This document shows, in pieces, positions 21,318 to 54,439 of a DNA stretch of 64,000 bases (position 1 is the stretch's first letter; each line of letters begins with the position of its first letter). The notes beneath the pieces were generated by a model. The model ran no database searches. It was given only the letters and a program-made list of their open reading frames with translations, and had not been told where the DNA came from. The position numbers and the translations under genes are program-made. This DNA is from Ramazzottius varieornatus. Taxonomy: Eukaryota > Animalia > Tardigrada. The DNA lies in NCBI GenBank assembly GCA_001949185.1, contig BDGG01000022.1, positions 62,001 through 126,000 on the forward strand, read 5' to 3'.

Positions 21318-22101
21318 CTTCGAGGCGGTTGCAGCCTATGCAAGTAGGGAGACCAAGTACAAAGTCAGATGACCTAGGATAGGAAGAGCATTGGTAATCA
21401 GGATTGCCTGTAAAACCGCAAGAGCTTCTGCCATGCTTACAGATGTTTTCTTACCTTGCGTTAGCACAACACAGCAAGGCCACAGTCAGCACTTCCCAGC
21501 AATCTCTCAGGGTGATCGTTGGTGTGAAGGCGAGGAAAGGAGAACGTGGAAATGGCAGCAGAAGAATTTCTGGTTGACGAAGTGCAACGTTCAACGCAAT
21601 CAAAAATTATACGATCGTGTACAGCAGGCGGAGTCCTCCTCCTGCCTTATTGGCTGCCCGCGAAGGTGCGGTTGGAAGCCAGTCTGTCCGTATGGTTTGC
21701 TTACGACGTCATGATGTTCTGCTATAAGCGCGATGACGACATGCGTCGAAGTTTGTGCTTTACTTGCTGATGAGTCTGGGCCGTGGCTTGGTATGCTTTG
21801 CCTTCACGCGACTTTGCCTTTATGCAAGACTGTACATTGCCTTCAAGGTGACTCATGCGTAGTGAATCACATGACAGCACGAAATCGCGTAGCTGAGTAG
21901 CATAACACCACGAGACAACACAACTTTAACCTCTCGCCCTTACGCGCCGTAACTTCGTAACCAAGAATTAGCGGACTCGAAGGACGCCACTTGCGTGCGA
22001 CTTTGCCCATTACGAATTTTCTTGCCTTAAATTCTCACTTCCTGCGATCTACTCTCGCTTTCTGCGTTTTTTGCCCTGATCCCTCCAACTTTCGTCTCGT
22101 C

Positions 22102-25100
22102 ATGGAAAGGCCGCCGATGATTGTGTCCGACGATGAAAACGACGTTTTTTTTGATGGCTCGGTTGTGAACGGAACGTCCAGTGTGGATGGTACGCCAAAA
22201 GACAACAAGCGGATCAAGCTGGAAAATGCTGACCAGGGAAGCCCATCTGCTGCTCTCGATGAACGCCTTGCAGCTGCAGCTGAGTCAGAATGGGATGATG
22301 TGGCTTACCCGAATGACCAGACTACAATAACGAGCAACTACAACGGTGATTCGCTTATTCCGAGCACATCTTCTGAATATAGAGGGCAAGTACCGATTTA
22401 TTTTCCATTTAGTCTGCTGAATGTGCCGGCGAGGTCCGTGTTTTATGCGCATGTTCCTTGCCTTGTATAAGCCGGCGACCAACGTTTCGCACATGCCGGC
22501 GAGGTCGATTTAATATTGGCCAGTAACTATCCATCTTTGCAGTCTGCCGGCAACAACTGGTTACCACTCATGACAACTAGCTTACTCATCTTTGTCGTTT
22601 TAGAAATTCGGCTCCGGCGAGCGGGGATAACTCTCTCATATATCTCTCGGACGACGAACACTATGACCTGTCGGCTAACTCCACGAGTGCTGTAGCGGCT
22701 GCCGGAAATTTGTCTTTGTCCCCCACCCCGTAAGTGAAACCGGCTTTCGTGCACGCCGGCGCGCTCTGTTTGACACAACCCAGCAGCAACACTTAATGTA
22801 TACACACTAGATGATCCATGATACTCTGGAGGTTAATTTTGACATACAACAACAGGTGTGTCGGCGATGTCTGTTTTATATACTCCAAAGATCGGTATCT
22901 TACACAAGCCGGCGAAAAAAAATTTTACCTAATATTACACGCATTATAACACAGCGGTCTGCTTTTGAATGGAACCATGCGAAACTAGTGACAAGTCGTC
23001 CTCGTACGTACCGGAAGACGAAGGCCATGAGATAACTGCGGTACAGACAAGCCCAAGGGATAGCACAGAAAACTCGTCAGTCTTGGCGGAATAAGTACGA
23101 TTTCGGTCAGATACAATACTGTTTAAACTAGACTAGCATAAGCTAATTTGCTGCTTTTTGTAGTGAGACGTCATTTTCAGCGCCAAAAAAAGTTTTCAAG
23201 AACACCCGTCCTGCCGCTCGTGCTGTTTGCTAACCGAGGCGAACTTCCCTTCGATCCGTCCGGCGAAGAAAGCGTTTTCGGACCATATTACAGATTGTGA
23301 GTGATGCACCTGTACATCTAAGGGGTAACGGCAATATCTGCCGGCGAGGTCGTGGCGTCATCTGCCTGCAAGTCCCGGACACTATGCGCTGGCGAGGTTC
23401 CGGCACTTAGTGCCGGCGTGGTTTCTGCACTGAGAGTTTTCTTGTTTTGCAGTGACTTGAGGTACCGCTGTTTCTAAACATCGGAAAGTGACTCCTCCGT
23501 CTTGGCGTGGCTCAGTAGTCCCGAAGTTCTTCATGTGTATGGCTGCAGCAAGATGCCTCAGTGCTTCCAAGGACGTGCCTGGTTCGCGGTAATCTTTGAG
23601 TCCGAACAACGGATCTACGGGCTGGTAGCGGACGATGGTAACGGCTGCTGGAAGGACAAGAACCGAAGATTCGAGCGTGGCAAGAAGCTCGACGACGAAA
23701 GAACGCCATTTGTATACATGAAGAAAGACTGGTGCAGCTGGCCCAACGGACAATCAAACGGCTTCAAAAGAAGAATTCTGGCCTTGGTAGAATCGGAAGA
23801 CAAATGCAAGGTTCCACTCGGTAATTTTCTGGTTGTGGAGTATTCGTGGCAGGAGGGTAGCACAACGCAGCAGTTCAAACCGGGAAAAACCTACACGAAC
23901 CGCTCCGTTACCAGTGAAATGCGGAAACTGACATCACCAGTTGCCCGTGGGAAGTCTCTTACTTCCAGGGACATTTACTTCGAAGTGGCTTCAGCAGTTC
24001 CTGAAATGGACCGAGCACTAAATCCGTGGTCCCACCGGAATTCGTCAAGCATTCACTATCAAAACCGCAGCGAACAAGGAAGTCTACGGTTCCGATGCGG
24101 AGAGCTACTTACGTGCGAGAGACGGTGTCATTTTGCGGCAGTACCTGAACGAAGATGGCACCAAATCGGAGAACTACATTCTTGTCGATCCTCATCATGT
24201 TGGACTGCTTGCAGTGAATGGGAGTCGTCAGCAAAAGCGTAAGTGTCATCCAGTGCGATCTGCGAAGTCAGTAGTCTGTAACTTAGCGCGTTCGTTAACG
24301 GTATGCCAGCGAGCTCGCTGATATACTAACCAACGAGCATCCTTTTGCATATGCCGGCGAGCTCGATGGTGTCCAAGCCGACGAGCTTGATTTGCTTACG
24401 CCAGCGAGCTCTTTAATGTTACCTCTTTGAGCCACGATGCTACTGACGATGCTAAGCCTTGTCCTATTGAATTTACGTTGGTTTCAGGCACACCACACGT
24501 GCAGGTCGACGTGACGTTCAACCTCGGCAATATGTTTGTCGTCACGATGGTCATCCAACACCCGTTCTGCAAGAATGCGGAAACCGGGAAACCTACCCTT
24601 GTCATCGGTCCAACGATGCTAACTCAGAAGAAATCACAGGCTTCATATGCGGTGTTTGAAAACTACCTTCGTAAGTGTCTGATCGGTGTTGGCGTGGATG
24701 TCCTGTCTGAAGACTGGTCATCAACTTTGTCACAGATGGAGAGCGAGCTTTGTACGAAGCGTTCCGTCAAGCCTTCCCTCGGCATAACCACACGCTGTGT
24801 GTGCTGCACATTCGAAAGGGAATAGAACGATACTTTGATGGGAAGAAAAAGACTGCGTCCGAAATAGCGTTCGTTATGAATACGATTTTCGGCTACACTC
24901 GCACAGACGGGTTGGAGAGAAGACATGTTATGGGACTGATTGACTCGGTATCGGAACAAGCATTCGTTCGGCGATGGACGGAAATTAAGATTTTCCTTGG
25001 TGCGTTAACTTTCAGCGCTGGCTCGAGAGGAACCATCATAAGAACTTCCTTGAGAAGCTTATTCTACCGCAGGCGAAGCCATGGGGTTTTCTCGCGATCT

Positions 25101-26385
25101 GCCCAACACAAATCTTGCCGAAGCCGAGCACAAGGCGCTGAAAGCGTTCTTCGGAAAAAATAAAGATCCAAGAGAGGTGGCTGAAAGACTGCTGAAGTTG
25201 TACGCGGACCAGGTTACCCACTTGTTCCAGTGCATGAAGAACCAGGGAAAATACAGAGTTCGGGAAGAGTTTGCTAAGGACCTGCTTCTCTCGAGGGAGG
25301 AAGCTCGTGATGAACGCCATATCGTAGCCAAGTTAAAGAACAGTTCCCAAAATGCGACGTGCAGGCGATAGTGCTCACTGCAACCTGGCGCCAGGTGAGA
25401 ATTGGTTTAACTGTAAGCATGTGTGAAGCCGGTGAGGTCTGCCATATATGGCTCGACGAGGTCGACCATGTACATCTCGACGAGGTCGATTGCGTAGAGC
25501 CTGGCGCAGAAGCATCACCGATGCAGCAAGCGCTGGTAGAGTTCGCGAGACAGTTCGGCAGTTTGTTAGTAACCGTTTGGCCGATATAGGTAGCTCCCGG
25601 TAAATCCTCCAACGTATCACTACCGGAATTGCCTGAGTTTCTGACCACCGGTCGCGCACCAATGTTTGCTAACAGCTGGAACCGCGCCATGGAACTTCGG
25701 AGCGACTGGATCGTCCAGTTGTCCGATTTGGAATGGCTGAACTTCAAGAACAGGTAAAGTCCGCAAAGTCCTGTCATCTGACAATATATATCTCTAACCA
25801 CCGGTGAAGGAAAGTGCAGCTGTTACCAGTCTCAGACGAATAGAGATCCAGCATGCAAGCACATCATAACCGTGGCTGCGACTACAGGCCAAGTCGACCG
25901 GCTAGTGGAGTGGCTGAAGGTGTAAAAGAGCACGAAGGTGGTTGGCAGCTGGACATTGACGAGCACTGGCGGAAAAATGCCTGGCCAGAAGCAGAGGACT
26001 GTGAAGGGAAAAGATTTCACCAAGCGGACAAGCACTGAGGCTCTTGACATGGATTTGCAGGAAGAAGGCTTTTGTTTTAGAGGAGAGGGATGCGCGAATG
26101 GTGAGTGTTGACCTGTGTCAAGCTGTATTCTTTTACTTTATTTTGTGTGAATGTTCTTGTCGGAGAGCCCAGTGCTGTGTAAGCCGCGAGCTCAGTACCG
26201 TGTATCCCGGCGACTTCGATGAAGTGTGTGCCGGCGAGCTCGGCGAAGCGTTGCCAGTAACAGCTAATATGTCGCGCTTTCCGCAGGGAAACCATGGCAG
26301 GATAGTACTTACGAGTTCAAAATCACAAAGGTCTCGGTTCCTGGCTCGCGATACCAGTGCCCCGGATGCCGAACATCGTTCATGA
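22102..26385 (+). pseudogene. Degenerate intron-containing MULE transposase with SWIM zinc finger
   Basis: VDVTFNLG, IGPTMLTQKKSQASY, FVTDGERALYEAFRQAFP..HTLCVLH, TNLAEAEHKALK; SWIM finger CSC-x9-CKH at 25815-25862. Frameshifts near 24715, 25010 and 25072. Confidence 0.88.
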
Positions 26386-28165
26386 AGAAGCCAGCCGAAC
26401 AAGATCTGCTCGTCACCCGTGTAGAACAGGACTTCGAAAACGGAATTGGCGGTCATTGCGTTGCCGCGATGTTGTCGGCACCATATGAACAACCGCTGTA
26501 TTAAGATTCGACACAGCAAATTTCACTCCGATAACGATGTTATCGAAGACAAAATTCTTCAGAAGTTGTCCGATGGAGAGCGTGCTGCTATCCGCAATTT
26601 TCGTTCCGGATACATTGTCTAATTTGATTAAAACTTGAAATCTCTTCACGGTCGTGGAAGCATTGAGCAACTTATGAAATGTTAGTAGTCTGTTTTTATT
26701 AATATTTTTCTTTATTAATAAAACATAACAGCATGTCCCACACTTTGTATTGTGAGCCGTAGAACCCACCCGGCGGAAGAGGAAACCGAATTAGATGGGT
26801 AGGGGCAAGTATCAGAATGTATCTACTGCAGAAGAAAGCCAACAGTATATTGTGATAAGATATCCGATAAGAGAACTAAAGGCTTTTGTGGGCTCCAAAC
26901 CAACCTGAACAACAAAGACTACTTCTTACAAGCTCATCAAGTCACGGGCAGCGCGATCGACAGAGGATTCTCGTGTTTGTTTGGCTGATGCAGGCTGCGC
27001 CGGTTTCACCGACTTGGACTTCTCATCCTGAGACTTGTTCTTGGTAACACCAGCTTTCTTGGCTCCTTCAGCCTTCTGCGTATCGGCAGTCTTTTCTGGT
27101 CGCTTGGTTGTCGTCTTGGAAGTGCCTGCGAAACATTGCTCTATACTTAACAGTGAAATGCTCGACTGAAACAGACGCAGTGGAGCCTTGGAAGCAGACT
27201 TACTTGTGCAAGGCTCTTCGTCGCTGCTGACTTCTTCGAGGGTATGTAATCGCCGAGGCGCTAGAATCTGGTCGAGCTCTGTCCGCTCAAACAAATCTAA
27301 AAAGTTCTCAAGACCTGTGGGTTATAGGGTCAGGTTTCTCTTTAGCGGCCTGTCATCGCCGTGGCCTTTCCCTTAGCCCTTGGTCACCTCGAATTTCATT
27401 CTCCACATGGCGGCTAAGGAGGCACTCCAGACAGCAAATTCGCCGTGATGATGCTTCTTAGACGCGGTCCATCTGGAACAAAGAAAGTAGGTCAATGAAT
27501 TCGCATGATACTCGCACTACCTGACTACTCTGCGTACTAACGTTTTCAAAATCCACAGTACCAAAGCACTCTTTCTAAGCTTACCTTCTGAAGAACTCCC
27601 ACACGCCTTTGCTGTATAGATCGCAAGTGTTACTTTTTTCAAAGTTCTCGACAATCCTGTAACGATGACAAAACCCACAGCACGAAACGAGTGTGCTGAT
27701 TCTGCAAAACCTACTAATCAACTGCACCGCAGGACTTTGAGTTCTTTTCCGGAAGGTTTTCAGACACGTTGGTCACGCAGTCGCTTTCTTCGTTGTCTTC
27801 ATCATCTTCGTCGCCTTCCTCGTCCTCATCACTTTTATCCTCGTCTTCCTTTCGCTTCGTCTCTGTTAACAAAGCCAGCTCATTTGGTACCACTATAAAT
27901 CGTAAGTAGTTCACAATGTAAGTGCAAGCTTTGCCGAGATAACTGGTTTACGCTACCTTCGGCATCAGCAGCATTTTTCTTTTTCTTCTGCTCATCCGCA
28001 GCACTGAGGTCCATGGATTCAGTAAAAACCGTAATGGCGTCCACAGTCTCGTTCACTACAAAGACATGGCAGAATGTACTTTGGCGGATATACTTGGCTG
28101 TACAGGCCGACGACCTCAATACACTGTACGCCGGCGACCTCACTACACTGTATGCCGACGACCTC
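22425..28165 (+). repeat. Seven intronic arrays of a GCCGGCGAG(G/C)TC motif at about 24-bp period, specific to the MULE
   Basis: Motif starts: 22425/22471/22495; 22755/22860/22908; 23340/23364/23388/23412; 24305/24329/24353/24377/24400; 25428/25452/25476; 26159/26183/26206/26230; 28106/28130/28154. Confidence 0.88.
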
Positions 28166-29086
28166 TCAAAGCGAACCTTCATAGTTTTTATGTCGCGAAT
28201 GGGGAAAAATTTCGGAAAACTGCCCACATTCTACCTGCTTCGAGTTCCTCGTCAGAAGACTTCTCGAGTTCTTCACTCGATATGGTCGGTAGTCCATCTG
28301 CTGGAGCGAGCAAAGGCTCGATTATCTTGGGCGGTGCATCGACTGCATACGATTCTACACTGTTACGATCCTGCTTGCTGCTCGTCGGACTTGCAAATAT
28401 GAAACAAAAGAGGCTTCAGCCGAGCAATGACCGAGCAATGAATTCCCATGAATCGCAAACAAGAACTAGAATTTAGTGAAATATTGCTGTTCGATCCAGC
28501 CTGTAGTGTTCACCGTTTTGTCGAGCCTGTAAAGACGAGCCTGTAAATCACATAAACGCAACCCATTCTTTCAGCTGTGGCGCCTCTTCTGCTACCTCCC
28601 TCTCCTCGGCCTCGCACGGAAGAAACTCCGTCGAACAGTACAGGAGTCAGACTTGGAGGCATCCTTGTCTTCTTCTCCGTCGTTTGCAGACTAGTGGCCC
28701 TGTCTTTCTAAGCCGTCTTCTTATTTTTGATTCTACTAAAATCACACAAATTAACCATTATCACTCACAAATCTACCAGGAGAAATTTGCACGGTAATGC
28801 CATTTTCTACGCAGTACTGACCTGGCCTCCATGAAGACATCATTTACGCCAGAGGCCTTCGCGTCATTCTCGCCATTCTGGAGCATCAGCGAGTCGCTGA
28901 ATATCCACTCGTCATACCTAAAGAGGACAAGCACTCAAACATCTTCATTCCGCGAACCTAATGGACACCGGAGCGTGCTTACCGTTTCCCCCAGCCTGGG
29001 TAGTGAATCCTGTAGATGGGCACGGACGTGGCCTGTTCTCCGGGATACTTGTCCGCTTCGATTAGGATAATCTTGGCCTTGTGCCA
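26926..29086 (-). pseudogene. MULE accessory gene: chromo-barrel (Tudor-knot) domain, acidic and Lys-rich middle, C-terminal RESSVDRAARDLMSL; 5'-truncated with internal stops
   Basis: Exons 29086-28983 and 28917-28822 splice to WHKAKIILIEADKYPGEQATSVPIYRIHYPGWGKRYDEWIFSDSL, the MRG15/MSL3/MOF-type YxIHYxGWxxxYDEW signature. Further exons run down to the stop at 26926. Confidence 0.75.
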
Positions 29087-29135: not shown

Positions 29136-30131
29136 TAGGGTTGTTAATGGATGGATAAACGGTTGAATGGATGGATATGCGGATGGATAAAAACTTATCC
29201 GGATACCATTTGGATGGATAAAAGGTTTATCCGTATCCAGCTTCTTGGATAAAACTTTTATCCGGATTATCCGGATATTATCCGGTTACACCAATTAGAT
29301 ACAAACCATATGTTCAATCACTCGAGCCAAACCGAAACTACCAAACTTTGTAGCGTATCTATTCATGGTCTGTCATCATTGCTACCATGGCTTCAAAAAC
29401 CACCGTTCAAGAGTTCAGACATAAGGCTTGAAGGGCCTCAGGTTCTAGGCGGTTACGAAGGACTGTATCGACCACAACCAGAGAATGCACTCTCAGGAGG
29501 CACAAAAGAAGCCTGTGCAGCTAAAACATCCTTCGCAATGCGGTACAATGTCGGATAGCGGCTTTCCGACATGCTCCAAAATTCCAGGCATCTCTTTTGA
29601 CTGATTCCTTTGGATCCAGGAAGAATTGGTCATCTTCGTTAAGCTGGGAGTCTGCTGCGGAAGTGACTTGCGCCATCGTCCGTTCGCGGATATACAGCTG
29701 CGTATTCGGAGGTAGAGCAGTAGACTTCTCGGCAATGTCGGATCTTCCTCTTTGGCTGTAATGAAAACAACTTACAAACAGCACGAGCTATAGTTCGTAA
29801 GAACGGAAGAGTGTAACGAGAAACAACGTTCAATAAGCCGACTTCCGGTAGGCTTGTAACAGCAGAGAGATTGCGCATCGTTACGATTCTTTCAGAGGTA
29901 CGAAACGTTAGCAAGACGAGTTGGGCTGTTCTGCTTTGATTGTCTGTTTTATTGATTCAGGTAGGTTAATCCGAATAAACCTCGGATGGATAGAGATGTT
30001 ATCCGGATCATATCCGGATGGATAAGAGTTTTATCCGATTAGGAGCTGGATGGATAAGATTCTTATCTAATCCATGTTTTATCCGGATATATCCGGATAA
30101 ATCCGTTGTGGATGGATAATTAACATTCCTG
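29136..30131 (-). mobile_element. Internally deleted hAT of a second family (996 bp) nested in the first hAT
   Basis: TIR YAGGRWTGTTAAT; 8-bp TSD CTAGGAAC at 29128-29135 and 30132-30139; GGATGGATAA/ATCCGGAT subterminal repeats. The minus-strand relic RYPTLYRIAKDVLAAQASFVPPESAFSG...RNRLEPEALQAL is a hAT dimerisation domain. Confidence 0.92.
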
Positions 30132-30387: not shown

Positions 30388-32850
30388 ATGTTTGGAAACA
30401 GGCTGACGTTCAACCAGGAGCTGGAACAGATTCGTGCGGAGAGCGAAGAAAGGAATGCCGTACGTCGCGAAATGGACGAAGGTGAACTGGACGATATGCC
30501 GATGGAGATTGCCGCTGCGACTTCGCCGCCACCTTCTCTAGGTTCATGGACTTCGACAGTCAAGGGTAAGAGAGCCGCGAAAGAAGTGAAACGCCGAGCG
30601 CCTATCTACACGTATTGGAATCTGGACGAGAAAGCGAAGAAGTTCAGATGTGGGTTTGGCAAGTGCAAGCAGACTTACGCCGAAACCAACTCCAGCTCGA
30701 TGCTGACTGCCCATACCAAGTCTTCTCACCGAACTGAATGGAAGAAAGCCGAAGGCAGAACCACGAATTCTGCCAGCTCAAAATCAGCAGCAGTACCCGA
30801 AGCGTTCCAACCCGTAGATCCAAAGCTGAGCCGTAAAGAGCAACAAGCGATTGACGATCGCCTCAAACGACTCATCACAGGTGGAAATCTACCCTTCGCC
30901 CTTGTGGACTATCCTGAAGTCAGAGAATTTGCCCAAGCTCTGAATCCTCTTTATGAAGTACCGAGCAGGTTCACTCTCAAAGCTTGGCTGTGCGCCGACT
31001 TCGAAAAGTATAGGCAGAAGGTAAGGCTAATCTTGCAAGATTACTATCATATTTCTCGAATTCAGAATTCTGATTGTAGGTGAAAGCTGAGCTAGCTAAC
31101 GTACCTGGACGAATCTCATTGACGTTAGATCCGTGGATTTCTGTGGCTCACGAAGGATATCTGGGGCTTATGGCACACTGGGTGACTTCAGAGTTCGAGT
31201 TACAGAAGTTACTGCTCGGGTTTGTCAGCCTACCAGCCGAGCACACTGGGGAAGCCCTGAAAGAAAAAGTCATGTCAATCCTGAGAGACTACGGTATCGC
31301 GCACAAGACGTTCGCCTGGACTATGGATGGGGCCGCGAACATGAAAGCTTTCTTCAACGACATGAAACCGGAACTTCAACTTGAGAGACAGAGCCAGAAC
31401 GTGACTACTGAAGGTTTGTATTCACAAATCCATTCTTGGAAGTCCATTTCTGAATTCGGAGATTAAAACAGCTTAATTTTTGTGAACGATTATCGCTTAT
31501 GCATCTGCTTTGCAGTGTCGGAATTCCGGAGACGGTGCGTCTGTCAAGTGATGAACAACGTGGCGGAAGTTGGCATTGAGGATGACTTAAAGCTGGTTAG
31601 TTGGGTACGTGAGATGGTCAAGTTCATACGAAAGCCGAAAGCAAAGAAACAGTACATCGCGTTGCGAGAGTCGGAAAAAGACAGAGACAAGGATAGACAT
31701 CCCAGGTTACCCTTGGATGTCTCCACAAGATGGAGTAGCACTTTGCCAATGCTACGGGGTGCTTTTGAGGCGAGGCACCACCTGGAAAAGTTTCGCGGCT
31801 ACGTACGGTACCACCACGTTCAAGAAGAACCTACTGAAAGATTCTGAATGGGATGACGTGAGCCGCTTGATACGTTTTCTGAGTCCATTGGAAGAAGCCA
31901 TAAACGACTGTTCGGCCTCGAAGTCTCCCACTTTCCATCTCGGCAAGCAGTGCCTGGCTATCCTTCAAGACCACTTCAAGGTAAAATTAGTTAACTGATA
32001 GAAGAGCTACTTCCGGTTCGCAATGAAAGTTTCTTGGTATTTGTATACCGTGGTTTGAATATCTCACTATTCGCGTTTAGGTTTCATTCTGCTCTAACAG
32101 AATTCCGAAATCGAAATGTGAATCACACTATTATTAGTCACCAAAATACTGACGTACGAACCGATCCTCCATCAGATGCTCTTCTACCAGATTAAGTAAT
32201 TTTCTCTTAAGGCCGTGCAAGACGATCCGAGCAAGGTAAGAATAATTTCTGCATTCGGTTTGGTGGCGTTTTCTATCACGGAATTTCGTTATAGAAACCC
32301 TACATCAAGAAGACAGCAGAGAACATGAAAGCCAAGCTGACTTCGGTCGAACTGGATTGCTGGCAGCAGGAAGTCACAATCGTTGCCCTTCTTCTGGATC
32401 CTTGTGTCAAAACAAATATCTTCGCAAGCCCCCTGGAAAGAAATTACAAGCCACGGAGGTGCTGAAGAAATACGTCGGTCTTTACTCGGATAAAAATGTC
32501 GGAATTCGGAAAATGTCACCGTTAGTCAATCACAGCCTACATCTCTTCGCGACTCTTTCCTGAGAAAGATCACTAAAGGGTCGACTGCTCAACAGAATGA
32601 AGTCGATAGTTATCTTGGAAGCTCAGCGGAACCAAAGTGCGACGTCCTGGAATGGTGGAAATCCCGACCTAATGTTTTCCCTGTCTTGTCAAAAATGGTG
32701 ATTGACTTTATGGCTGTTTGCGCTTCGTCGGTCCCCTCTGAGCGATGGTTTTTCGACCGTGCAGGTTTCGATGTGTCTGAAATCTTGGTATTTTTTTGAG
32801 TTTCCTACAGCGCAGTTCGATTTGTCGATGACGGATGAATAAATTGTGAA
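30388..32850 (+). pseudogene. hAT transposase (BED zinc finger, DDE, C-terminal dimerisation domain), frameshifted
   Basis: IYTYW...CGFGKC...LTAHTKSSH; NLPFALVD; ISLTLDPW; TMDGAANM; LDVSTRWSST; LLLDP; EVDSYL...DVLEWWK...FPVLSKM...ASSVPSER. The CxxH motif reads CVCQ and there are frameshifts (e.g. near 31815). Confidence 0.93.
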
Positions 32851-50045: not shown

Positions 50046-53000
50046 ATGGATCGGAACGAGTCGTCGGACGGCATGAACATGGACGACAATCTGCCATTTT
50101 CCCATCTTGATGGCGCGGCGGAAAAGACCAACATATCTGCATCCCTGACTGGACGGGAATCTCCTAGTGGATCCTTTTCACCCGAATATAGTTTCTCCAG
50201 CACGCAGTTCTTCAGCCAGCAATCGACGGACGGGAGCGGGACTGTCGTCAGCCAAAGCAGCAGCATGGTTGTCACCTGCAACTCTACAGCCGACATGAGC
50301 GTTGGAGGGGATTCCTTCCTCAGCGAACTGCGTCGCATATCTGGCCAAGATGCTGAGCAGTCTTCAGGTATGTTTTATTTAATGGCCTCTATGATAAACG
50401 CGGAGTTTGTTTGGGATGCAGGTTCAGACTTTAGGAATCCTCTGTAAATGCCAACATAAAACAAAATCAACATGCCACCATGTTGTCAAATCAAGCTCAA
50501 GTCAATCAAACTGTGACATAAAGATGAAAGAAGTTCGAATTGGAATTCTATTGTACCTTTTTTGTTTTGAAATTGGGCGCCGATCTATGCGAAGGACAAT
50601 GGTCGCTTGGTTTACCACTGTCTTGTCGAGTAGGTTTGGATGATAGCCTGGGGAATCTGCCGGCGGTGGGATCGAGGCAGAAGGGAGGAACAATGGAGGA
50701 AACGGTGAAAGAGCTATCGTCATTGCACAACGACTCATTTCAGCCAACACCTTCCAAGCAAGCCTCGTCCCACTATAACACCGCAGAGATCTCCGAGGAC
50801 GAGGCTGAGGGCGAGGAAGCCTTGGGAGGGGATGTCAGCACACAAGTGGCGGCTGTGCTGGAGGAGAGTTCGCCGTCGAGCGACGGTGGGCAGTTGGTGG
50901 TGTCGATGGCCATGAACGGGCTGAAGGATGAGGAGGCCATCAAGCAAGAGCCGGGCATTCCGCTGTACGACCGAAGTCGCGAAGGGTCGGTGGCTTCACG
51001 AACCAGCTTCATCTCGACAGAAGATGTCGAGGAAGGGGATGCCAGACGCCCCGCCAGCCAGACAGCCAAGAGGAAGGGCCAAGATGGCCACGCCCAGCAG
51101 GTAACGAGCAGTATCGGGCTGCAGTGGCCTCTTTCATAGATACTCACTTGGACGAGCATCTCCCAAGTTCAAAAGAACCAGTTCCCTATCGAAAGCTCAA
51201 AGCTTTTCTTGACAACATTCTAACATGCGAACACAAAAGATCGACTGGAACGTTTTGATCAAGCTGAAGACGTGCTTGTTCCCACATCAATTCGCGCATG
51301 ACGTCATGGCGTTTGGCGGGTCGAGTTGCAGCGGGAAGTTGGTTCTTACTATAGCATGCATTGTTCCACTTGTAGATTGAGTACGGTAAACTTGACTGAG
51401 GTTACTGTATGTCGTGTTGGGATTTTAGGGTGGAGAAGAGGAGGAAGGGACAGAGGAAGGTGGACGGCGTGCGCCATCGACGCGAGCAGCGGCGGAAGCC
51501 AGTCGCAAGAAGGCCAGCTGTGTGGTACCCGACTGCGACAACTATCAACAGTCGAGGGCCAACGTCTTTGTCTTTCCCGACGGCGACTTGAGACCGCTGG
51601 TCCGTCGCAAGTGGCTGTACGCCCTCAACACGTCGCGTGTGGGACGGAACAGGCCTCTGGACTTGGCCGCTCTCAAGAAGAACCCCAACTACGGCCTGTG
51701 TGTCAAGCACTTTGACCGTCAAGAGGACTTTGTCGACCCGACCAAGCCCGACAGCGAGCTGACCCTCAAGAAGGATGCCGTTCCCACCATATTTCTCACT
51801 CCAGGTCAGTTCATGTGCGCTGCGCGGTTAGGCCGCTGTCTGTAGACTAGGGAGCGGGGAAGTGGGCCTGATGTGGGCCTGATCGGTGAGGGTGTAGGAC
51901 CAGAGTTCACCGCGGTTTGCCGCCTGTAGCAGGCTCGCAATCTTGTTATGCTTCTCTTTTCAAGTTGCATTTTGTCCGTTGGTTGTTTGTAATTTGTGTG
52001 TGTGTGTGTGTGTGTGTTTTCAGAGGCTGCTGTGACCGATGCTTCGGACAGCACTTCCGGCAAGGCCAAAGTGTCATCCAGTAATAGCAATGGAGCGCTA
52101 GCGGGCATCTCGCAGTACGCACGAAAGACAATTCCAAAGCCAGCAGCCAAACAAAAGAAGAAGGCAAATGGGACTGAGGTCGATGAAGAAGTGGAGGAGG
52201 AGATGGAGGGGCAGTCCTCCTCGGACGAAGGTGACCTTGACGATAGCGATGCCGACGAAGACTGGGACAAGTCGGCCAAGAAGCAGGCCAAGAAGCTGGA
52301 TGCAGCCGGCCTCGTAGCCAAACGCGGCAGACCCAGCAGACAACAGATGGAGGAAAAGAAGGCGCTGGCACAAACATTTGCCCCTACCACCAAACCATAC
52401 AGCCGCCACGGTAATATCAGTCTCTCTCTATTTCTGCTCTTGTTGCCCAGTGTCGTCAAGGCTGTGCTTTCAGATGAGGCAGCCAGTTACAATCGGAATG
52501 GAAGTCCGCAGAAGGGCGGCAAGAGTGGCAGCGTCATCACCACCGTCTTCCTGCCCAAGTCCATCCTCAACGGGCCACTTCCGCCACTACAGCTGAACAA
52601 CGCCACGACGACGATAACGACACCGGCCAAGACTACAACGCCCATCAAGGTTGTGCAGAGCAAGCCGTCGTCGCAGCCCGTCAAGAGCGCCACCAAGGCG
52701 TCAGCCAGCAGCACCTCGCAGAGCATTCCTGCCCATCGCAGCAGCGCACCTTGGCCTTTCAAGCCGGCAGCGACACCCTCGCCCTCTCAGAAGGTTGGTG
52801 GCAGGGTACCCCTTGACTTTCATTCTTGTACAAGGGTACAAGGGTCTTTGTGTGTGCTTGCAGGTGGTGGTGGTGGGCAGCGCAGCCTGTCCCATCGTCA
52901 TGCCCAACCGTTCGCCCGTCACGCGTCAACCCATCAAGCTGGTGCTGCAGAAGCTGCCACAGCATCAAGAGCAAGTGTCGCCCCTTCGACCTCCCACCAA

Positions 53001-54439
53001 AGCCACTCATAACATGTTCAAGAGCGCCAGACATGGTCCTGTTATGGGTGTGGGCATTCAGGTAGGACGACAACTACTGCACAGCTGGCCAAAGAAACCC
53101 TTGTTTTGTCAGATGGCGCACACTCGCAGTGTTGGTCGTCGGCAGTGTGCGCCACTTGGGAAAACGATCTGATCAAGTTGCCCAGGGTGCGCTTGACCTC
53201 GTTGGCTACTGCTGAAGCTTGTCGGAAAGGGTTTTCGCCTCTGCAGGTGGAAGAGGAGGATTTAGAGCCGGACTCGTCGGACGAGGAAGTGCAGGACATA
53301 TTGCGCGAGGCCCAGGAAGAGATTCTAGAGTTAAAGTTCAGCCTGGAAGACGCCCTGATGGATTTGTCGGCCGAGAAGCAGAAGAATGCCCACCTGGAGA
53401 CGCGCGTCAACGCCTGGATTCGCGCCCACTTTAGCGCCTCCTCCATGGAAGCCGAACGACTGGAGACACTGAACAACGTGGCCACCTACTACTACGACTT
53501 CGCCAAGAAGGCTGAAGAAGGCAAGCGCACCATCAAGGCTGAACTGGAACTCTTCAGAGCCAACTTTGTCCGCGCCCAGAAAGAAACCGAATCGTATCGG
53601 TAGGGCACGATCAAGACTGTCGACATGTTCAGAAGAATGTCACATCAAAAGCTTTCCTTTTGCAGATCGCAGATTATCGAGTTGCAAGGTGCCTCGACGC
53701 GCGAGCTGGAACGGATTCAGCAAGCCAAGACGAGGAACGAGAAAGAAGCCCAAGAGACGATCCAGACTTTGCGTCGTCAGCTGGCCGACTCGGCGGTGGC
53801 TGCTGAACACGCTAAGCGAGCGCAATTGGCGGCCGAAGAGAATGTCCGCAGGCTGAATGCGGGTGGTGGCGCGGCACTACGCCCTGCGGCCCACCACGCA
53901 GCACCACAGCCGGCCTATGCTGCCTCCGACGAGTCCGAACCCACACCGCCACCCAAGAAGCGAGCTCCGCGTGGCTCTAACAAGAAGGCCACCGCCGCCG
54001 CCACCGCACAAGCCCAGGCCATCGTGGCACAGCGCCAGCGCGAAGAACAGGTAACAGAAGTGCGGGGCACAACAAGATTGTTATCCCAAGTGGCGTACGT
54101 TTATACTGTTAATGGCTTGAGTGGCGCACGTCTTCAGTGTTACAGGCCGGTGCAGTGCACCGCTTGAAGAAAATTTGGGAGCTTTTTCAGAAGGGTTAAG
54201 TGGAAATTCGCTGTGCCAAACATTTGTCGTTTCCGTGTCTACAGGCAGCAGCGGAAGCTGCGGAAGCCCAAGCGGCAGCTGCGCAGGCCAACACGGGACG
54301 AGGGAGGAAGCGCGGTCGAGCAGCCAAGGAGCCGTCGCAGTCGCAGACGCCGTCGCCCGCCAAGGATTCTTCGGCAAGTAGCAAAAAGCAGCGCGAGTCT
54401 TCTGTCGACCGTGCTGTCCGTTACTTGATGAGCTTGTAG
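50046..54439 (+). CDS. THAP zinc-finger protein with AT-hook-like motifs, coiled coil and C-terminal RESSVDRAVRYLMSL
   Basis: CVVPDC...FVFP...W...LCVKHF...LKKDAVPTIF (about 51519-51795); KRGRP; heptad-rich region at 53250-53850; consistent splice sites. Confidence 0.8.
51995..52016. repeat. (TG)11 microsatellite immediately upstream of a splice acceptor
   Basis: Directly visible; followed by TTTTCAG. Confidence 0.9.
53110..53158. repeat. Intronic hairpin repeat family, single unit
   Basis: TGGCGCACAC-loop-GTGTGCGCCACTTG followed by GGAAAACGATCT, in a THAP-gene intron. Confidence 0.8.
54087..54166. repeat. Intronic hairpin repeat family, one partial plus one degenerate unit
   Basis: CAAGATTGTTATCC-CAAGTGGCGTACG...GAGTGGCGCACGTCTTCAGTGTTAC, in a THAP-gene intron. 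Confidence 0.75.

Follow-up and report, generated by a model that had tools for sequence, protein, structure and literature searches.

That viruses and transposons mimic short linear motifs by convergence is well established; the Ty5 integrase targeting domain, for example, imitates a host Sir4 ligand. In Arabidopsis, the Mutator-like elements (MULEs) of the VANDAL type carry an extra gene beside the transposase, and its products, the VANC-type accessory proteins, are thought to act on element chromatin. Capture of host fragments by MULEs (transduplication) is known from plants, where the elements concerned are Pack-MULEs (PMC5861414, PMC13317346). MULEs are also listed in curated tardigrade repeat libraries, in a paper that does not mention an accessory gene (PMC11071193). 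Here, we compare with these systems a MULE of the tardigrade Ramazzottius varieornatus whose accessory gene ends in the same C-terminal 15-mer as a host THAP protein. What is new is the combination: a homologous 15-residue host motif, probably captured and held under selection, ends a putative transposon chromatin reader in an animal. MULE gene capture in plants and motif mimicry in viruses, each known alone, meet in this one animal case.

The element copy and the host gene both lie in the window, that is, the whole stretch of 64,000 nucleotides that was analyzed (contig BDGG01000022.1, positions 62,001 to 126,000). Their features are collected in Table 1.

Table 1. Features of the element copy and of the host THAP gene, with positions counted from the first nucleotide of the window.
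Feature	Position	Strand	Basis or remark
MULE, family A copy	21785..29086		left TIR from 21785 (GGCTTGGTATGC...); right end missing beyond 29086
Transposase reading-frame pieces	23478..25922	+	MULE domain piece 24711-25160; SWIM-like CxC..CxH 25782-25922
C-terminal 15-mer and stop, transposon accessory gene, window copy	26926..26973	-	RESSVDRAARDLMSL and stop; degenerate form
Accessory gene, last exon (exon 8), coding part	26926..27125	-	spliced RNA contigs
Accessory gene, last intron, 78 nt	27126..27203	-	GTAAGT..CAG; spliced RNA contigs
Upstream accessory exons	27204..29086	-	28983-29086(+), 28822-28917, 28596-28732, 28235-28526, 27957-28055, 27585-27862, 27204-27472; spliced RNA contigs
Extra intron within exon 6	27612..27718	-	annotated isoform of another copy; donor GT changed to AT in window copy
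Acidic stretch	27720-27862	-	accessory exon
Chromo-barrel (Tudor-knot type)	28822-29086	-	weak Pfam half-domain matches
THAP zinc-finger domain, host gene	51519..51794	+	Pfam THAP
Conserved coiled-coil exon, host gene	53244..53600	+	64% identical to paralog
Last exon, host THAP gene, 64 codons	54245..54439	+	predicted; AT-hook GRGRKRGR at 54293-54316
C-terminal 15-mer and stop, host THAP protein	54392..54439	+	RESSVDRAVRYLMSL and stop

The element in the window is one copy of a 7.5-kb repeat, family A, and comparison with RNA contigs shows loose ends at 29086. Long copies of the family, 89-95% identical, are found at C1:3801697-3808933, C5:1394853-1402396 and C5:849302-855150, with fragments elsewhere, and in every long copy the accessory gene and the motif lie inside the TIRs. 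The copy at C5:1394853-1402396 has TIRs of ~75 nt and the 9-bp TSD GCAGTGGGC. We assign the element to the Mutator-like group because it combines TIRs and a 9-bp TSD with a partial MULE match and a SWIM-like finger. The transposase pieces were searched singly; the match to PF10551, found with a single exon piece, has an E-value of 1.5e-4 and 22.6 bits (cut-off 27.6) and spans profile positions 68-98, the last third of the domain. The SWIM-like finger, also on a single piece, scored E 0.051 in Pfam, and the remaining transposase pieces had no Pfam match at E <= 0.01. A second, more distant MULE family (B) with the same accessory gene is present at C2:2513500-2523499 and C2:5295800-5305799, and conservation between the two families is good only in the chromo-barrel (about 80% identity) and in the tail. 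At six further barrel-exon loci (on C18, C7, C14 and C9, and two on C4) the tail is absent within the 4-5 kb downstream; these are probably truncated derivatives.

The accessory gene is spliced. Seven GT..AG introns are defined by RNA contigs of three studies that match the window copy at 99-100%, and the 3' UTR, with its aataaa signal at 26716-26711, reaches about 26698. The reading frame assumed for the tail in an earlier, sequence-only reading of this DNA was borne out by these contigs, in which the last exon (27125-26926) is joined in the frame of the motif. The joint 27124/27203 (cut +1) occurs in three RNA runs from three studies and is crossed by record 17 of contig X3, and in other copies the last intron carries in-frame stops. 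Reading frames over the junctions were checked exon by exon, and protein searches were likewise made per exon. The first half-barrel exon alone matched the Pfam Tudor-knot family with an E-value of 0.0087 (16.4 bits compared to a cut-off of 20.8) and the MSL3 chromo-like family with an E-value of 0.026; because the domain is interrupted by an intron, the barrel matches do not reach the Pfam cut-offs. The second half of the barrel (YDEW...) had no separate Pfam match, and an MRG domain was found by Pfam in none of the accessory exons.

The same reading had spoken of a transposon accessory protein; the window copy does not encode an intact one, having premature stops, a 1-nt deletion and a lost splice donor. 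Exon 3 has a stop where other copies have Gln, exon 6 has the deletion relative to copies C5a and C5b and to one RNA contig, and exon 7 has two stops. The donor belongs to the extra intron of exon 6, by which P0009 (RvY_10114-2), from another copy, joins VLRCS to CKGVW; the annotated isoforms RvY_10114-2 and -4, again from another copy, connect the acidic exon with exons 7-8. The gene copy in the window is a pseudogene that is transcribed, and none of the five family-A copies examined is free of defects. When the RNA-supported junctions are applied, no family-A copy examined has a single open reading frame from the barrel to the tail, and the junction of exons 3 and 4 that such a frame needs in family A is predicted only, with a donor near 28562. 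For copy C2a of family B, a single open reading frame from barrel to tail is predicted by a model that uses canonical splice sites. We infer from these exon models that barrel and tail would be joined on one polypeptide in family A.

Both 15-mers were found, by translation, where the sequence-only reading had placed them, and its count of eight nucleotide differences per 48 nt between the window copy and the host THAP gene was reproduced by codon-by-codon comparison. Five of the differences are synonymous (window copy/host: CGA/CGC, GAA/GAG, TCC/TCT, GAT/GAC and CGC/CGT), one is in the stop codon (TAA/TAG), and two are non-synonymous (GCC/GTC, A/V, and GAC/TAC, D/Y). The Ser codon classes, TCN, TCN and AGC, agree between element and host, as had been claimed. 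The changes of V to A and of Y to D are private to the window copy: family-A copies at C1:3806801, C5:1397775 and C5:851364 have the host peptide at 15 of 15 residues, and the family-B copy C2b also ends in RESSVDRAVRYLMSL and a stop, again 15/15 compared to the host THAP protein. Copy C2a of family B has two changes from the common peptide. The 15-mer would probably form a C-terminal amphipathic helix with V5, A8, V9, Y11, L12 and L15 as its hydrophobic residues.

The recurrence of the motif in the genome, which the sequence-only reading had proposed to search for, was confirmed with a degenerate DNA pattern of 33 positions. In the 55.8-Mb genome the pattern has eight exact places and one with a single mismatch, and the reversed control pattern has 0 matches. 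A motif-like match at C4:2801135 is single copy and lies in a frame that differs from that of the adjoining acidic open reading frame; neither a THAP domain nor a barrel was found in its surroundings.

The similarity between element and host is confined to the motif. Its upstream limit, pointed out in the sequence-only reading, is real: in local alignment the 48 preceding residues score no better than shuffles (p 0.5-0.7), and a host-host comparison of the 48 pre-motif residues beats shuffles (p 0-0.02). HMMER alignments and an 'SP.AK' box were first taken as upstream similarity and were ruled out by the shuffle test. At the DNA level, host and element are alike over only 47 nt, at 89%. The element lacks the AT-hook that the host members have in common, and the phases of the last intron differ, being 0 in the host gene (predicted intron 54051-54244, with a GTAAC donor after ..REEQ and a CAG acceptor, phase 0 on both sides) and 1 in the element. 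Similarity over the exon-intron structure of the parent gene, as in Pack-MULE capture, was not found between the two. With similarity confined to the motif, capture at the DNA level is untraceable through flanks or UTRs.

Among the host gene, its paralog, and families A and B, nearly all changes in the motif are synonymous, which supports the earlier proposal of common ancestry with selection on the peptide. Over the 15 codons, the host THAP gene and family A differ by five synonymous and zero non-synonymous changes (pS 0.46); pS is 0.64 between the THAP gene and family B, 0.81 between families A and B, and 0.83-1.0 between the paralog and all others, distances that, like the argument on direction given below, rest on small numbers because there are only about 11 synonymous sites. 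Between lineages the peptides are identical except for one S/T change in the paralog and the two changes in C2a, and the small non-zero pN between identical peptides is due to averaging over paths at Leu codons. In family A, on the other hand, seven of seven changes are non-synonymous (two in the window copy and five in copy C50), as expected from the neutral decay of single insertions. The 15-mer is a short linear motif under strong selection. Because two element families kept the peptide as it was while their synonymous sites diverged, we suggest that it is a functional docking site.

One alternative is that the tail is passive cargo of the Pack-MULE kind, without function for the element, and that its identity reflects youth rather than selection. 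MULEs often capture host fragments (PMC5861414, PMC13317346), and every copy examined is damaged, as this explanation would have it. It is very unlikely, however, given that the peptide stayed unchanged across the synonymous divergence from the host and, even greater, between the element families, that the remainder of the exon is no longer recognizably similar to the host, and that in either family the tail directly precedes the stop codon, with neutral decay seen within a family only.

Alternatively, element and host could have reached the same peptide independently, as mimicry without shared ancestry. Viral and transposon motif mimicry provides precedent, and the failure to find flanking similarity would be in keeping with such an origin. 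Convergent motifs typically share three to five key residues, however, compared to 15 of 15 residues here, in the same place at the stop. The codon classes of Ser (TCN, TCN, AGY) and Arg (CGN) agree across all lineages, and 10 of 15 codons are identical between the THAP gene of the window (C22) and family A, compared to 4.6-5.8 expected by chance given the same peptide (P about 0.002-0.016). Of the explanations considered here, convergence is the least probable.

The motif is found in a tardigrade family of THAP/coiled-coil/AT-hook proteins. The host gene in the window spans 51519-54439 on the plus strand, from the THAP domain through the coiled-coil exon and the AT-hook to the tail, and is single copy in the genome except that one of its introns carries a short interspersed repeat. 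Its THAP finger passes PF05485 at 51429-51842 (E 1.9e-11, 45 bits compared to a cut-off of 23.9). A colinear, single-copy paralog at C1:6317695-6320566 (THAP domain 56% and coiled coil 64% identical) also has the AT-hook and ends in RETSVDRAVRYLMSL and a stop, 14/15 compared to the host THAP protein with one S/T change. In a whole-genome scan, 2 of the 19 THAP domains of the genome belonged to tail-bearing genes. Among 1.84 billion representatives, a profile of the coiled-coil exon matched no more than six proteins. One is P0004 (XP_055339028.1) of Paramacrobiotus metropolitanus, with a THAP domain of 24.0 bits in Pfam, which ends in an AT-hook, SPKK and then PRESSVDRAVRYLMSL, the tail being 15/15 at the C-terminus; a second Paramacrobiotus paralog, P0006, is without the tail. 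In a tree of the coiled-coil exon, P0004 falls outside the clade of both R. varieornatus paralogs with support of 98/97, and therefore the tail predates their duplication. Judged from these protein sequences, the tail is older than the split of two tardigrade superfamilies. The last THAP exon (64 aa) had no match among 5.8 billion proteins when proteins of 35-112 aa were searched, and the C-terminal 60 residues of P0004 matched P0004 alone among proteins of 564-1794 aa; within these two length ranges no motif-bearing protein was seen outside tardigrades.

The sequence-only reading had left it open whether the element captured the motif or the reverse. The occurrence of the tail in P0004, an outgroup to both R. 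varieornatus paralogs, narrows this to transfer from host to element, a direction that is probable on the sequences compared. As in Pack-MULE-type capture, the host-derived piece lies inside the TIRs, and the parent gene lineage is present elsewhere in the genome. In the opposite scenario, the host THAP ancestor would have gained its terminal coding piece from the accessory gene of the transposon by exonization or domestication. THAP domains and many host-transposon fusions are indeed transposon-derived, and the element lineage could be old, given that at synonymous sites the distance between families A and B equals that between the host paralogs. Yet tail and AT-hook already stand together in the terminal region of the Paramacrobiotus outgroup, and the codons of the element are nearer one paralog (10/15) than its sister (3/15), as would be expected of a donor on the C22 branch, later than the duplication. 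The C22 gene itself shares 7-8 of 15 identical codons with family B and only 3/15 with its own paralog, and reverse transfer would otherwise call for a later conversion event limited to the final 45 nt of C22. We regard reverse transfer as unlikely.

We favor, with a probability of about 0.7, an old capture of the motif from host to transposon, held by selection, with the docking partner shared with the THAP factor. On this reading, an ancestor of the two R. varieornatus MULE families would have taken the motif-coding end of a host lineage of the C22 type and added it to the C-terminal end of the accessory gene, in which a putative MRG/MSL3-type chromo-barrel is the second conserved module. 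The flanks would have diverged after the capture while the tail was kept. Active element lineages would have preserved the peptide unchanged and single insertions would decay, the window copy being one such decayed, still transcribed insertion. In the protein, the barrel would read a histone mark, and the borrowed tail would dock on the host partner of the THAP factor, to tether that partner or to compete with the factor for it. As this partner, the PAH domains of Sin3 would be the leading candidate.

Sin3 had already been named as a possible partner in the sequence-only reading, from the spacing of hydrophobic residues in the tail. The spacing A8-V9-x-Y11-L12-x-x-L15 meets the helix patterns A-A/V-x-x-L and L-x-x-L, which are low in information, and it fits published Sin3-interaction helices. 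For example, the Tet1 helix that binds Sin3 PAH1 has the form A-I-x-A-L-x-x-L, with L-x-x-L critical (PMC6168491), and the Mad- and KLF-type cores that bind PAH2 follow X-A-A-X-X-phi and A[AV]X[VA][LV] (PMC1557813). The tail resembles the Mad-type X-A-A-X-X-phi core; its Tyr at position 4, as in Mad, breaks the looser A[AV]X[VA][LV]. Y11D, one of the changes in the window copy, introduces a charge into the hydrophobic face. PAH domains accept many amphipathic helices.

The Sin3 gene of the genome lies at C4:~2929500-2932500, with PAH1 in one exon and PAH2 split over three. We predicted the complex of the genome's own PAH1 exon (L048:1390-1758, minus strand) with the C-terminal 35 residues of the THAP protein, which scored 0.38, compared to 0.02 for the best of three controls; the runs share at least 90% of contacts, and the pLDDT of the partner is at least 56. 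Of 78 solved complexes 51 reach the mark set for this test, as do 2 of 108 mismatched pairs. Passes with scores of 0.60 or less comprise only 5 of the 78 solved complexes and all four mismatches (of 180) that pass; a pass of the kind seen with PAH1 is wrong more often than not unless the guess was likely beforehand. The helix pattern agrees with the Sin3 proposal, and the PAH1 prediction supports it weakly; Sin3 as the partner of the tail is possible but doubtful.

Capture and selection may equally hold with a different use of the tail, as the ligand of another helix-binding domain, in pairing with the THAP protein, or as a signal for localization or stability. Patterns such as A[AV]xxL and LxxL abound, support from the PAH1 test is weak, and no link between THAP proteins and Sin3 was found in the literature compared; against such a role stand the good fit of the hydrophobic spacing to published Sin3-interaction helices (PMC6168491, PMC1557813) and a PAH1 score 0.36 above every control. 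We consider the chance of a role other than Sin3 binding to be about even.

If barrel and tail act together, the accessory protein could be an adaptor made by the element, in which a reader of histone marks and a THAP-derived corepressor helix recruit or titrate Sin3/HDAC or the partner of the THAP factor at selected chromatin sites. We offer this only as a tentative idea of low probability. If true, it would make the protein a transposon-made functional analog of Eaf3/MRG15 in Rpd3S, and the element would use it for its own targeting or for escape from host control. The wild-type tail and the naturally 'dead' window variant V9A/Y11D provide a ready probe for the partner of the tardigrade THAP family, and the same pair could show how a transposon exploits host chromatin machinery.

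The tardigrade case shares features with each of several known systems and departs from each. Like Pack-MULEs, the element has TIRs and a 9-bp TSD and carries sequence derived from a host gene. Unlike in Pack-MULEs, the piece in R. varieornatus is only about 16 codons long and is joined to the 3' end of a putative chromatin-reader gene that the element itself encodes, the element is of the autonomous type, the tail is under purifying selection in two families, and the host is an animal in which flanking or intronic host DNA is not recognizable. The accessory gene adjoins the MULE transposase as in VANDAL elements, a likeness of gene arrangement alone; VANC is a DNA-binding anti-silencing protein, whereas the tardigrade module combines a chromo-barrel with a host-derived tail.

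The putative barrel resembles MRG15, Eaf3 and MSL3 in the signature ..IHYxGWxxRYDEW.. and in weak Pfam Tudor-knot and MSL3 chromo-like matches; in contrast to these proteins, the MRG domain was not found in any accessory exon and the protein is encoded by an element. With the Sin3-interaction domains of Mad/Mxd1, KLF/TIEG, Tet1 and SAP25 the tail shares an amphipathic helix with small-small-large-large spacing (PMC1557813, PMC6168491): A-V-x-Y-L-x-x-L in the tail, A-I-x-A-L-x-x-L in Tet1, and A-A-x-x-L in Mad and KLF. Unlike interaction domains of the form A[AV]X[VA][LV], the tail has Tyr rather than V/A at position 4, and its putative helix ends at a free C-terminus. Finally, as in Ty5 and in viral mimicry, a protein of the element presents a host-like short motif with which it would reach a chromatin partner of the host. 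The motifs of Ty5 and of viruses are convergent and short, whereas the tail of the tardigrade element is homologous to the host motif, probably captured, and identical to it over 15 residues.

Copies of part of the accessory gene were found elsewhere in the genome: its two chromo-barrel exons recur at six more loci (L053-L058), with in-frame stops in two of them. A last exon or tail was recognisable at none of the six in the 4-5 kb searched downstream. The tail motif is likewise absent from P0006 (XP_055339117.1), a second THAP/coiled-coil paralogue in Paramacrobiotus metropolitanus that is encoded on the same contig as P0004, the tail-bearing homologue of the host THAP protein; its AT-hook-like stretch is present in degenerate form.

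RNA contigs bear on the splicing of the accessory gene within the window. One intron of 69 nt, which breaks the reading frame, is spliced in two runs and retained in the contigs of other runs. An alternative donor near 28562 (..ERMG|GT) is conserved, and together with an acceptor near 28392 this predicted donor would hold the frame in other copies of the Mutator-like element (MULE) and in the more distant family B. A separate joint, observed in a single run (X1), has its GT..AG on the plus strand, the one opposite the accessory gene; it may come from antisense transcription or be an artefact of assembly.

A short repeat in the THAP gene region is probably a small interspersed element within an intron. 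A second repeat directly adjoins the MULE copy where its right end is truncated, and loose ends of RNA contigs occur at 29086, 29116 and 29136. ORFs resembling a hAT-type transposase that bears a BED-like finger also adjoin the MULE; a Pfam search with two pieces of these ORFs gave no match at E <= 0.01.

Positions of the features discussed
Feature	Position	Strand or setting	Copies and identity
Accessory-gene intron	window 28527-28595
Single-run joint	window 27241-27326	plus
Multi-copy repeat	window 29137-29500		>20 copies, 72-97%
hAT-like ORFs	window 30388-32000	plus
Interspersed repeat, ~65 bp	window 53114-53179	inside THAP gene region	>30 genome copies, 77-97%
Chromo-barrel loci L053-L058	C18:303000, C4:1667300, C7:1620000, C14:1101700, C9:1871500, C4:2214700		61-91%
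Motif instance on contig C4	C4:2801135-2801166 (L035:8427-8471)	plus	1 genome copy

The instance on C4 reads SLSSVDRAVTYLMSL, with K next in place of a stop, and is a third kind of motif instance. Neither a THAP domain nor a chromo-barrel was found near it. MITE-like repeats flank it on both sides, an acidic ORF adjoins it in a different frame, and it may be the relic of another tail carrier.
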